Below, piece after piece: positions 1 through 7,328 of a DNA stretch of 64,000 nt. The stretch covers positions 434,001 through 498,000 of the forward strand of contig OZ218961.1 of NCBI GenBank assembly GCA_965112735.1, read 5' to 3'. Both the position numbers and the translations under genes were made by a program. Each line of letters begins with the position of its first letter. The first letter of the stretch is position 1. Source of the stretch: Phaeosaccion multiseriatum. Taxonomy: Eukaryota; Protista; Ochrophyta, other classes. Under the pieces are notes generated by a model. That model was not told where the DNA came from. It worked only from the letters and a program-made list of their open reading frames with translations, and did not search any database.

Positions 1-94
1 CGAGGGCTCAAAGGTGACTCAAAAGCGGTTCAAACGGCTCTTCATTCGTGCCTCAAGTCTCACTCAACTGCGAAAGCACAGTAAGAGAGATTGG

Positions 95-157
95 TGGGCT
101 CGGCTTGCATGTGACTGGGCTCGACTTGCATGTGACTGGGCTCGGCTTGCACGTGAC
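95..157. repeat. 21-bp tandem repeat x3 (TGGGCTCGGCTTGCATGTGAC)
   Basis: Three near-identical adjacent units at 95, 116 and 137. Confidence 0.9.
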
Positions 158-705
158 AGTTTCTGCTGCACACTCGCACGAGTGGAATGCTCATACTACA
201 CACAGTTAAAGAAGTAAGGGCATTTTCACATTAAAAAAAAGCGGAGTCAGGGGGGTCGGACTCAAAGGCATTCCGTGTTTGGTGGACAACAACAACAGCA
301 ACAAACCAACTAGAGCCTTCTCTTCTCAAAAGAGAGAGAGAGAGAGACACTCACTACTTTTCGTTGCTGCTACCCAATCAAACACGTCGATTGTTGCTCC
401 TTCCGAGTCGTCATTACCGCCCCACTTTCAACAGCTCTTGTGCCCTTACCCCCTGTCTGCGTATGTGTGTCTCTCTTACTCTCTCTCTCCCTCCTTCTCC
501 TTCCGTCCCTCCCTCCCTCCCTCCCTCCCTCCCCTCCCTCTCTCCCCACCCTATGCCCTCTCTCTCCGAGAAGAATCAACAAAAAGAGTATGGTGCCTCG
601 CCGCCCACCCGCCCACCCTCCCGTCCTTCCCTCCCCCCGAGCTCATATGCCTCTAAATGATAGGCTCTTCTGGAGATCTCCGCCGCTATGTGGAGGCCTC
701 CGCCG

Positions 706-3299
706 CTATTTGGAGGCCTCCAGCGCCTCCTTGGCGGCTCGAGCAATGTCCTCCCTCGGAATAGGCGTCCCGGTGACCTCCTTGTAGGCAGTCACCTCCC
801 CGGCTGTGTTGACAACGAGATACCCGCCCAGGGTTAGTCCGTCCCCCTTCATGTTCCCCTCGATGTTATTGTCCTTCAGGCGTTTGCCGAGGGCGGAGAA
901 TTCTCGGTAAATCTTGATGGGGTTCCTGTGCACAGGTAGGCAGATAGGTAGGCAGATGGGTAGGTACATGGGTACGTACGTACGTAGGTAAGTCGGTAGG
1001 TGGGTAGGTAAGTAGGTAAGAAGGAGAAGGGAGGGAAGTGGGGTAGGTGGGGAGGTAAGGGGACGTAGGTAGGTAGGAGGAGGGAAGAAAGGAAGGAAGG
1101 TAGGCAAGGCAGTTACCAATAATACCCTGTCTTCCCCTTCTCTTATCCTACTCTACCCTGCCTTACCCTACCCTGCCCTATCCCACCCTACCCCACCCTC
1201 CCTACCCTACCCCCCCGGTGCACCTTACTCACCAGGAGGTGGGCATGAGGGAGAGCTTGTTGTCGCCAAGGGCCTCGTAGAACGACTTGTTTGTGTCTGG
1301 GGGGCAGGGCGGTGGAGGAATATGGGTGGTGTCGGAGGCATGTCGTACGGGTGCGCAGTCACATACTTACAGAGGCTTGTATTGGCACACACACACCCTT
1401 CCTCTGTCCCTCTTCCTCTGTCCGCTTGTATTGGCACACACACACTCTTCCTCTGTCCCTCTTCCTCTGTCCGCTTGTATTGGCACACACACACTCTTCC
1501 TCTGTCCCTCTTTCTCACCCTCTCTCTCCCCGTCTCTACCACCCTCTCTCTTGCCCTCCCTCCCCCCCTCTTACTCTCTCTCTCTCTCTCTGTGTGTGTG
1601 TGTATGCTCTGCATGCCTTTATCAGTGGCGGTTCTTACCGAGGAAGAAGCCGTCATTGTCGGCAAAGTATTTGTTCTCGAACTCCCCGACGCCGAGCTCC
1701 TCGTCGGTCTGGTATATAAATAAGATGGAGAGGAGGCATGGTTTTGGAGAGACAGAGGGGGTGGGACAAAATGATATACATAAACTATTCTATTCCCTAT
1801 CTGTATAAACAGATAGAGAGTGGATATATATACAGTGGGTATATAGACAGAGAGTGGATCGTGTGTAAAACAGGATGTGCGAGGCGGGGAGGGGGGTTCT
1901 TGGAGCGGTGATTGCAGAGGGTAAAGTATCATCTGTAGAACAGACCTACATGCACATGTACGCATACACATACACACACGCACATACGCACACACACACG
2001 CACGCACATACGCACACACATACACACACATACGGACACACACACATACGCACCAGGACTTTCCCCACGGGTGCCAGTTCCTTGACAACGCCGTACAGAT
2101 TGAGGCCCTCGAAGAGCCCTGGGGGATAGAGGAGGGGAGAGGAGAGTGGGGGGACAGGGGGGTTTGAGATGGAGCAGGGAGAGTGGGGAGAGAGAGAGGG
2201 AGAGAGACAGAGAGAGGCAGAAAGAGAAAGAGAGACAAAGAGAGAGAGAGAGAGGGAGGGACAAGAGAGAGAGTGGCAGTAGAGTGGGGTATATAGAACG
2301 GAGAACGAAGGTAGAGGGAGAGGGATGGAGAGGAAGAGAGAGGAGGGGGGTGGGGGCAGAGAGTGAGAGGCATACGAGTAGGCAAGTGCGAAGGCTGAGC
2401 GTGACTTGCGTGGAGAGATGTAAATCACGCCGCCTTATCATGCGCCTCATCTCCGGCCCTTCCTCGCTCAACTCTTTCTCTCTCTCTCCTTCTCTCTCTC
2501 TCTCTCCTCCCTCCCTCCTCTCTCTCGTCTTCTCCCTTCCTTGCTCATTCCCTCTCTGTGCTCTCCTCTGCTCTCACCCTCTTTTTTCATTTCCATGAAT
2601 TCCCGGGCTTCGTCCCTGATGAGAGAGAAGAAGAAAAAACGGAGACGGGGGTAGAGAGAAGGTCGTGGAGAGGCAGGCAGGGGGGGGCGTGGGAGAGCAG
2701 ACATTAGATTACACCAACAGTTAGCGTGCATAATTCATATGCAAGATGTTGTAGTGGAGCATCCCGGCTTCCACGGTGACCTTGCACTACTCCCAACACG
2801 ATCCAATGAGGCACGGGCACTACTTACGCCAACACTAAATGATGCTACTGCTCTTACCGGCACAGGGGTCATCCCGACCTCCGCACTGCGAAAACCACTG
2901 CGAGTAGATGGGGGGGGGGGGCGGGGAGGAGAGCATGCACGCGACAAGGGGGGCAGCTGTGAGAATAGGAGGGAGACAAGTGAACAAGGAAGGAGAGGGG
3001 GGGGTGTGAGAAGCCGTGAAGCAGTCCATCCGCTCTACCTTACCCGCAGGCTTCGACTCCCACAGGGAAGCTCCCAGCACAGTTTCGTCGGACTTGATGG
3101 CGCCGTTTGCCACAGGCCTTAGCACTGCCTCGGCCAGGAGAGTCTTTCCGTGTGATGAGATTTCCACCTTTGTCCCGGGCGGCGATGGGCTCGACGCCGC
3201 CATGGACGGGCAGGTTGAGAAGGCCTGCGACACCCCAACGAGGGCTAAGGTTCCCAGCAGCAGCAGCTTCCCTGCCCTTTGGGTGTGAACTTGCAGCAT
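706..3299 (-). CDS. SELENOU: Selenoprotein U / PRXL2-like (AhpC-TSA_2) thioredoxin-fold protein with Sec in a UxxC motif; probable plastid-targeting N-terminus
   Basis: Seven phase-consistent GT-AG exons: 3044-3299, 2858-2897, 2578-2615, 2054-2118, 1639-1708, 1233-1296, 706-925. The spliced protein reads LWESKPAVVFAVRRSG[TGA]PLCRDEA...LYGVVKE...LGVGEFENKYF...FYEALG...GNMKGDGLTLGGYLVV, matching the SelU/PRXL2A pattern RRxG(U/C)xLCRxEA. The N-terminus is LLLLGTLALVGVSQA-FS. Confidence 0.85.
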
Positions 3300-3443
3300 G
3301 ATTTGAGTGATTCAGCAAAAAAGAAAAAAGAAAAAAAGGAATGCCGTGGGCTGCCATCCGATGCCACTGTTTTGAATCCGATCATCGATCCTCTTGTCAA
3401 GCACCCATCTATCTCAAGCTTACTCCTTGGTCTGCTCGCCACG
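3300..3443. promoter_or_regulatory. Probable compact bidirectional promoter/5'UTR region
   Basis: Only 144 bp separate the divergent start codons at 3299 (-) and 3444 (+). Confidence 0.5.
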
Positions 3444-6400: not shown

Positions 6401-7328
6401 CCTCTCCTCCTCCCTCTGTTGTACATCCTCCTCCCCCCTCCACGATTGTGTGTAGTATGTAACACTACGTATTACAATGTTTTATATTCGCTTTGCTTTT
6501 GGTGGCTTCGTTTCGGCTTTTGGCCTGTGTTCGGTCCGCCTTTATTAGTTTGCGGTTCGGTTCGAGTGTTCGTCGGTTTCGGAATGTGGCAGGGACATGA
6601 ATACGGCTTCTTACGTAATGGTATATATATATATGGTATGTCTCACGATCCTTGCTTGGCCATCCCTCCTATGATGGCTTGTCGAACAGGCATACGTGGG
6701 GCTGTTGATCGCGGCACGGAGCAAGGAGGAGGCCAAGGAGAAGAAGGCAGAGGCAGCAGCAGCAGCAGCAGCAGTTGGTGATGAGGCAGCTGCAGCAGGG
6801 GGCAAGGCGGGAGGAGGAGCGGGGGCGACAGCTCCCTCCTCAGAGGCCGGCATGCCAGGGGTGGCAGCAGCAGGAGCAGCAGCAGCAGCAGTTGGTGATA
6901 CGGCAGCCAAGGCATCGTCGTCGATGGAGGAAGATGATCCGGCGGCGGATGGGGAGGGGCGAAGGACGACATCGGGGCGAGCGGCAGCAGCGGTGGCGGC
7001 AACACGTACCCAAGAGGAGCTTGGTGAGAGAGAGGGGGGGGGGGAGGAGGGGGAGGAGGATAGCGATAGCGACGATGAAGAGGATGAGGACTACCAGCCG
7101 GCGGCGGTGAGCAGCGGCGAGGAGGGGGGAGGGGGGTGGGAGGAGGAGGAGGAGGAGGGGGAGGAGGAGGAGGAGGAGGAGGGGGAGGAGGAGGAGGGGG
7201 AGGAGGGGGAGGAGGAGGAGGAGGCGGCGGAGGAAGGGGAGGGGGAGAAGGGGGAGGAGGGGAGTGGGGATGAGACGGAAGAGGAAGGAGAGGGCCCAGC
7301 CAAGAAGAGGGCCAAGATGGCTGCTTGA
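3444..7328 (+). CDS. Rtt106/SSRP1-type double-PH histone chaperone with acidic C-terminal tail
   Basis: Exons 3444-3731, 4054-4099, 4419-4516, 4796-5110, 5735-5851, 6210-6344 and 6690-7328 are all in phase. Motifs: CIHPRGRFDV, VGCHHGVNEGALLPLKVGLLFFKPTLFIP, TRYVDLHV, EFTNIDRD. A long E/D tail ends in an NLS-like PAKKRAK. Confidence 0.8.

Follow-up and report, generated by a model that had tools for sequence, protein, structure and literature searches.

The DNA examined here is a stretch of 64,000 nucleotides (nt) from Phaeosaccion multiseriatum (the window; C12:434001-498000 in an assembly of 67 Mb and 22 contigs), which carries on its minus strand, at 3299-706, a seven-exon gene related to the SelU/PRXL2 redox proteins. 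The second exon contains an in-frame TGA that probably encodes selenocysteine (Sec). The exons, together with a candidate selenocysteine insertion sequence (SECIS) located downstream in the 3' untranslated region (UTR), are listed in Table 1. As read from the sequence, every intron has GT...AG borders, the intron phases are 1, 2, 1, 0, 1 and 2, and the exons all join in frame. The only stop in the exon translations before the terminal TAG is the TGA of exon 2; the remaining 249 codons and the 12 splice sites are intact. Upstream of the gene, an in-frame TGA (3314-3312) precedes the start ATG.

The sequence-only reading of this locus had claimed that a 40-nt micro-exon joins both neighbours in phase, that it places a TGA at the first redox residue of RRSG-U-PLCR, and that the five exons downstream are intact. 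All three statements hold: the phase agreement was confirmed by exon reading, the TGA faces the first Cys of the relatives, and the downstream exons are bordered by GT-AG, joined in phase and free of stops up to the TAG. Joined to exon 2, to which it contributes one leftover base, exon 1 gives ..KPA-V-VFAVRRSG-TGA-PLC-R.., with the final Arg codon formed by the two leftover bases of exon 2 and the start of exon 3. Omission of exon 2, i.e., a direct connection of exon 1 to exon 3, causes a frameshift with a TGA inside ten codons, and the micro-exon is therefore not optional in a productive mRNA.

The evidence for homology was collected exon by exon or by comparing database proteins with the genomic DNA in tblastn. 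Six full-length Cys-type relatives (P0045, P0051, P0024, P0079, P0116 and P0047) used as tblastn queries against positions 1-3400 of the window matched the exons serially and in the correct order, with P0045 recovering all seven. The final 31 residues of exon 1 were 42% identical to P0045 and P0024. The micro-exon was found with E values of 0.007-0.2 (53% identity to P0045), its translated stop facing the first Cys of the relatives' RRPG-C-xL-C-R, and exon 7 showed 42% identity with E values from 1e-13 to 4e-15 (2e-14 for P0045). Such an ordered match across seven exons, with the TGA facing Cys, puts the gene model beyond chance.

Table 1. Features of the predicted SelU-type gene and of its candidate SECIS (window coordinates).
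Feature	Position	Strand	Description
Exon 1	3044-3299	-	256 nt; ATG 3299-3297; 85 codons + 1 base; hydrophobic leader, then conserved domain start (..LWESKPA)
Exon 2	2858-2897	-	40-nt micro-exon, cag/TGGTTTTCGCAGTGCGGAGGTCGGGATGACCCCTGTGCCG/gtaag; codes (V)VFAVRRSG-U-PLC(R)
In-frame TGA	2869-2871	-	Proposed selenocysteine codon; first redox residue of UxxC motif
Exon 3	2578-2615	-	38 nt; codes (R)DEAREFMEMKKE(G)
Exon 4	2054-2118	-	65 nt; codes (G)LFEGLNLYGVVKELAPVGKVL; 43% identity to P0045, E = 5.5e-4
Exon 5	1639-1708	-	70 nt; codes TDEELGVGEFENKYFADNDGFFL; 62% identity to P0045, E = 1e-4
Exon 6	1233-1296	-	64 nt; codes (D)TNKSFYEALGDNKLSLMPTS(W)
Exon 7	706-925	-	C-terminal 72 residues + TAG (708-706); conserved GNxKGDGLTLGG block
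SECIS-like hairpin	237-429	-	193 nt; 3' UTR, 277 nt beyond TAG stop
Helix I	429-417 / 250-237	-	13 bp, one bulge
5' core	416-410	-	UAAUGAC, unpaired; AUGA 414-411
Helix II	409-399 / 268-259	-	10 bp, one bulged G
5' bulge	398-394	-	AGCAA; AA at 395-394
Apical extension	393-269	-	Single unbranched stem, ~125 nt
3' core	258-251	-	CGACCCCC, unpaired; GA at 257-256

The N-terminus (window 3200-3299, minus strand) reads MLQVHTQRAGKLLLLGTLALVGVSQA/FS.., a hydrophobic leader ending in ..VSQA/FS... Judged by eye, this leader presumably resembles the signal-peptide part of a complex-plastid presequence, with Phe after the likely cleavage site. Intron 6 is occupied at window 934-1112 mostly by a TACC/TACCTACC-type satellite, which recurs with 72-80% identity at more than 80 sites spread over most contigs.

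Exon 7 alone matched the Pfam family AhpC-TSA_2 (PF13911) with 22.9 bits (E = 1.2e-4; cut-off 27 bits). A word-based protein search with this exon gave no matches; a full HMMER search with the same query over 1.84 billion representatives yielded 136 relatives, with identities of at most 59% over the last exon only. The relatives that were tested are clear PF13911 members (40-69 bits). The only one among them with a solved structure is prostamide/prostaglandin F synthase (PRXL2B; PDB 9us9, 9usa), and its RRFGCVVCR aligns, via P0051, to the same CxxC motif as VRRSG-TGA-PLC-R of the window. Both PF13911 membership and the RRxG-(C/U)xxC motif located just upstream of the Pfam domain were thereby found. 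The last exon occurs only once in the genome, and no paralogue was detected. A metagenome scan provided one relative, which was intronless and of the Cys type. The only other genomic match to AhpC-TSA_2 (G000:C11:1585861-1586028, L011) belongs to a different subfamily without CxxC (..VVVAFFTHFGDFN..). As judged from these similarities, the locus is best explained as a nuclear single-copy gene in a stramenopile-type alga, encoding a thioredoxin-fold redox protein of ~250 residues from the SelU/PRXL2 family.

The relatives also speak on the residue at the position of the TGA. When all relatives of no more than 400 residues were aligned and counted as clusters, the column of the first Cys was occupied by Cys in 17 clusters and by Trp in eight (P0012, P0014, P0042, P0059, P0090, P0098, P0130 and P0139), the latter carrying RRPG-W-xLCRE at the otherwise invariant first Cys of CxxC. 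Moreover, 20 predicted proteins begin immediately after this column, with MCRE.., LCRE.., VLCRE.. or MLCRE... A single cluster at 90% identity combines three outcomes: P0138 stops at ..VVRRPG, P0007 opens two residues on with (L>M)CRAEG, and P0139 continues across the column as ..RRPG-W-SLCRAEG. At the level of the predicted proteins, this pattern is the signature of an in-frame TGA that was called a stop by one pipeline and Trp by another. The Trp of the eight clusters is most likely a TGA translated as Trp, which would make these entries Sec proteins mis-entered in the public databases. Among the relatives that extend over the column, those with the highest scores belong to the TGA type, and in the kin of this gene Sec-type forms seem to be no rarer than Cys forms. 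The column thus holds either Cys or signs of an in-frame TGA, and the UGA of the window falls on the Cys/Sec column of its homologues, which is a mark of selenoprotein genes. The sequence-only reading had expected automated annotation to truncate or skip such a gene; the relatives that start with (M/L)CRE, end at RRPG or carry W bear this out.

Decoding of UGA as Sec presupposes a genome with the corresponding machinery, and the genome search recovered three of its components. Ten tRNA-Sec genes scored above the Rfam cut-off (up to 71 bits), nine of them in a tandem array on C12, and ARAGORN, run on two loci, confirmed nine of the ten with the anticodon TCA. SepSecS was found on C15 (203 bits) and a SelD/SPS gene on C7, so that tRNA-Sec, SepSecS and SelD/SPS are all present in the genome. 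Two glutathione peroxidase (GPx) genes have a TGA at the active site, one on C3 (..VASK-TGA-G) and one on C1 (..NVASE-TGA-G). The SepSecS protein is 51-54% identical to the closest public proteins, the nearest being from brown algae and oomycetes. Identity this low indicates that the proteome of the organism is missing from the databases, and the absence of the SelU-type protein there is therefore uninformative on its annotation.

The C3 GPx gene is followed by a compact, clean type II SECIS (L015:655-739, minus strand; G000:C3:4049888-4049972) with the core AAUGAC / UGACCA and AA located 15 nt past AUGA, which served as a positive control. In the C1 gene, the active-site exon (..IIVNVASE-TGA-G, followed by a GTAAGT donor) lies near L029:2240-2265 and a conserved exon at L029:2403-2516. 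A very stable SECIS-like hairpin is located ~1.8 kb 3' of this conserved exon (L029:4318-4401, plus strand; G000:C1:333317-333400). Its sequence is paralogous to the C3 GPx SECIS, with the core ACGA, not AUGA, and it might be an element in decay or one whose non-canonical core works.

Downstream of the SelU-type gene, the room for a SECIS is bounded by a convergent plus-strand gene at L001:1-650, ~850-1500 nt before the window start, whose repeats (..LKWLRSEEVQCEWDERSC..) are ankyrin-like in look; the 3' UTR is therefore limited to ~1.5 kb. This interval was scanned for an AUGA/GA core flanked by helices with a custom scanner, which recovers the clean compact SECIS past the C3 GPx, Rdx-family and deiodinase-like genes used as controls. 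Early scans of the 1.5 kb between the stop and the convergent gene gave weak candidates only, because the AUGA-to-GA spans were limited to ~110 nt. With longer spans, the AUGA at 414-411 found its partner in a GA 156 nt away, and the resulting hairpin at 429-237 has the architecture given in Table 1. An unconstrained fold of 435-234 (ViennaRNA, fold tool) returned this architecture both as the minimum free energy (MFE) structure and as the centroid, with -69.7 kcal/mol and z = -2.57 for the hairpin. The predicted fold has an unpaired AUGA/GA core between two helices and an unpaired AA above helix II, the features by which a SECIS is recognized. Its context is familiar as well: AAUGACGA.. around AUGA and the AA 15 nt downstream copy the C3 GPx SECIS, and the partner strand ..UUUGAGUC-C-GA-CCCC (268-251) resembles ..GCAUC-U-GA-CCA of the same element.

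The helices flanking the core score -27.2 kcal/mol, compared with -25.2, -21.9 and -20.1 for the three control SECIS of the genome. In a background set of 128 kb with 332 AUGA sites and partners up to 220 nt distant, seven other pairs scored equally well, three of the seven with both helices at -12 or better, which corresponds to ~0.03-0.08 chance matches expected in a 1.5-kb UTR. Nine other background pairs reached -26 or better, and only one of these also had both core strands unpaired in the MFE. The exception is a plus-strand pair (34143/34255) inside what looks like coding sequence, and it fails to form the SECIS architecture. On the strength of the predicted fold, the SECIS-like hairpin at 429-237 was taken as the probable SECIS of the gene, with caveats concerning its distances and low complexity.

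The other candidates were discarded. The AUGA at 645 forms a G-rich/CU-rich hairpin with a poor helix I, and the AUGA at 413, taken with a GA of the (CT)n tract, gave a Y-shaped structure that is not the MFE; longer spans gave GA 257 as the partner of the latter. Approximately 3% of random AUGA sites score as high as these two candidates. The AUGA at 193 belongs to a mini-hairpin without AA, and the AUGA at 44, a UUGA-core hairpin within a MITE-like (miniature inverted-repeat transposable element) inverted repeat and a UAGA-core hairpin ~350 nt ahead of the window start were rejected as weak. Neither of the SECIS-like plus-strand pairs at 6672 and 34143 adopts a SECIS fold, and their positions coincide with an exon border or with coding sequence. 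No SECIS was found on the minus strand in the next 10 kb downstream. A covariance model built from a single GPx SECIS (R1) did not recognize the other control SECIS and was dropped, and MAFFT produced no alignment of the three control SECIS.

Two repetitive features were observed in the same 3' region. The MITE-like element, ~280 bp long, covers window 1-92 and ~190 nt before the window start (L001:1310-1592); it has the terminal inverted repeats CTGTGCTTTCGC.. / ..GCGAAAGCACAG, TA on both flanks and internal degenerate TTTGAGCC repeats, and a copy of its part at window 3-84, with 89% identity, lies on C11 near 1962257. At window 100-165 (minus strand), in the 3' UTR downstream of the candidate SECIS, there are ~2.6 tandem copies of the 21-nt unit GCAAGCCGAGCCCAGTCACAT.

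Several observations weigh against a Sec codon served by this hairpin. The hairpin does not fit the standard models, either RF00031 or the SECISearch distances: AA and the 3' GA are separated by ~136 nt and the quartet and AA by 15 nt, compared with 15-39 nt and 10-13 nt in the classical SECISearch pattern (PMC2375036). The Rfam model SECIS_1 (RF00031) had no match at E <= 10 in window 1-3400 or in L001 600-2230. Across the whole genome and at the GPx loci the same model was also blank, missing even the clean control SECIS, and its failure here therefore carries little weight. The apical stem consists in part of low-complexity (CU)n/(GA)n, and the z-score reaches just -2.6. Finally, TGC or TGT becomes TGA by a single-base change, and a recent nonsense allele would give an identical coding region.

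The last point leads to the strongest rival explanation, a recent pseudogene or nonsense allele, in which the TGA is a true stop, the product is a ~98-residue fragment or nothing, and the hairpin is a chance fold of repeat-rich DNA. The single substitution required, the size of the candidate SECIS beyond the classical limits, its absence from the Rfam results, and a 3' UTR rich in low-complexity sequence with the 21-nt tandem repeat and the MITE-like insertion would all suit such an origin. Nevertheless, we consider it unlikely: the stop falls exactly on the Sec/Cys column, where many relatives show signs of an in-frame TGA, all other codons and splice sites of this single-copy gene are intact, and the AUGA/GA core, both helices and the AA bulge appear in an unconstrained MFE structure, with no comparable background pair folding in this way.

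Even less probable is that the locus encodes an ordinary CxxC enzyme of the PRXL2 type, whose TGC/TGT appears as TGA owing to an error in base calling or assembly or as a rare variant. Only one base separates the codons, but the assembly is of chromosome scale with 22 contigs, TGA-type relatives are at least as common as the Cys type, and a Cys form would not need the SECIS-like element found downstream. The weakest alternative, a wrong model of exon 2 in which the micro-exon is skipped or replaced and the mature mRNA has no in-frame TGA, can point to a CPPCR-like stretch in intron 1 (2955-2929) and is highly improbable, since that stretch has no preceding VxxRRxG block, skipping destroys the frame as described above, the junction residues ..KPA/VVFAVRRSG match the relatives residue by residue, and tblastn detected no further exon-2-like sequence in window 1-3400; the last exon is present only once in the genome.

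Overall, the locus is very likely a genuine SelU-type selenoprotein gene, with its internal UGA read as selenocysteine. The interpretation of the TGA given by the sequence-only reading thereby gains support, at the level of sequence, from the relatives, the machinery and the candidate SECIS. In the proposed mechanism, the transcript would be spliced as modelled across the seven exons. In the mature mRNA, ~745 nt would then separate the UGA of exon 2 from the SECIS downstream, and Sec-tRNA would decode this UGA. The hairpin at 429-237 would bind the Sec insertion factors and direct the recoding, so that selenium is inserted into the active site RRSG-U-PL-C-R, with Sec replacing the first Cys of the family CxxC. 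The resulting PRXL2/SelU-type protein would act as a thiol/selenol oxidoreductase with a UxxC motif. The role of the hairpin is the more tentative part of this scheme: judging from its predicted fold, it may be a working SECIS with an apical stem several-fold beyond the standard patterns, and we hold this as a serious possibility short of an expectation. If true, this alga, and perhaps its relatives, would tolerate a greatly extended SECIS and possibly non-AUGA cores, such as that of the ACGA hairpin of the C1 GPx gene. SECIS-first pipelines and distance-limited search tools would then systematically undercount the selenoproteome in such lineages.

The main value of the locus is in annotation. 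Without Sec-aware calling, the gene would be split, cut at the UGA or begun at the Met of exon 3, and the latter start would drop the catalytic residue. With this SelU-type protein, which apparently has a targeting leader, the large selenoproteome of the stramenopile-type alga would also gain a member.

Mammalian PRXL2A, PRXL2B and PRXL2C, which we take to be the Cys-containing SelU1-3, share PF13911 with the gene and can be aligned with it both in RRxG-C-xx-C-R and in the C-terminal block GNxxGD..GG. In contrast, Cys takes the place of Sec in the mammalian proteins, which require no SECIS, and their similarity to the gene is weak (E = 0.05, last exon only). Sec-containing SelU proteins are published from Thalassiosira pseudonana, with two genes, and from Ostreococcus tauri and O. 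lucimarinus (PMC2375036), and the vertebrate SelU1 is treated in PMC3316567. Overall, Sec forms are present in diatoms, green algae, fish and birds, and Cys forms in mammals (PMC2375036, PMC3316567). The gene described here resembles them in belonging to the same thioredoxin-fold family, in having Sec as the first residue of UxxC, with Sec and Cys forms alternating between lineages, and in its occurrence in an aquatic unicellular eukaryote with a large selenoproteome. Unlike the published SelU genes, it has its Sec codon in a 40-nt micro-exon of a seven-exon gene, an apical SECIS extension of ~125 nt and an N-terminal hydrophobic leader, and its identity to any public relative does not exceed ~59%, in the last exon only.

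As to the candidate SECIS, type II elements with long mini-stems are described for Ostreococcus, Chlamydomonas and a deiodinase-like gene of Dictyostelium (PMC2375036); stems of the present length are not known to be among them. With these elements, the hairpin has in common the AUGA/GA core, a 5' bulge with AA on top of helix II and further pairing beyond this bulge. In comparison, its stem is far longer (AA to GA ~136 nt versus 15-39 nt) and contains dinucleotide repeats, and its function is predicted. The locus is therefore best described as an additional SelU gene of the published type, unusual in its Sec-codon micro-exon and its very long candidate SECIS.

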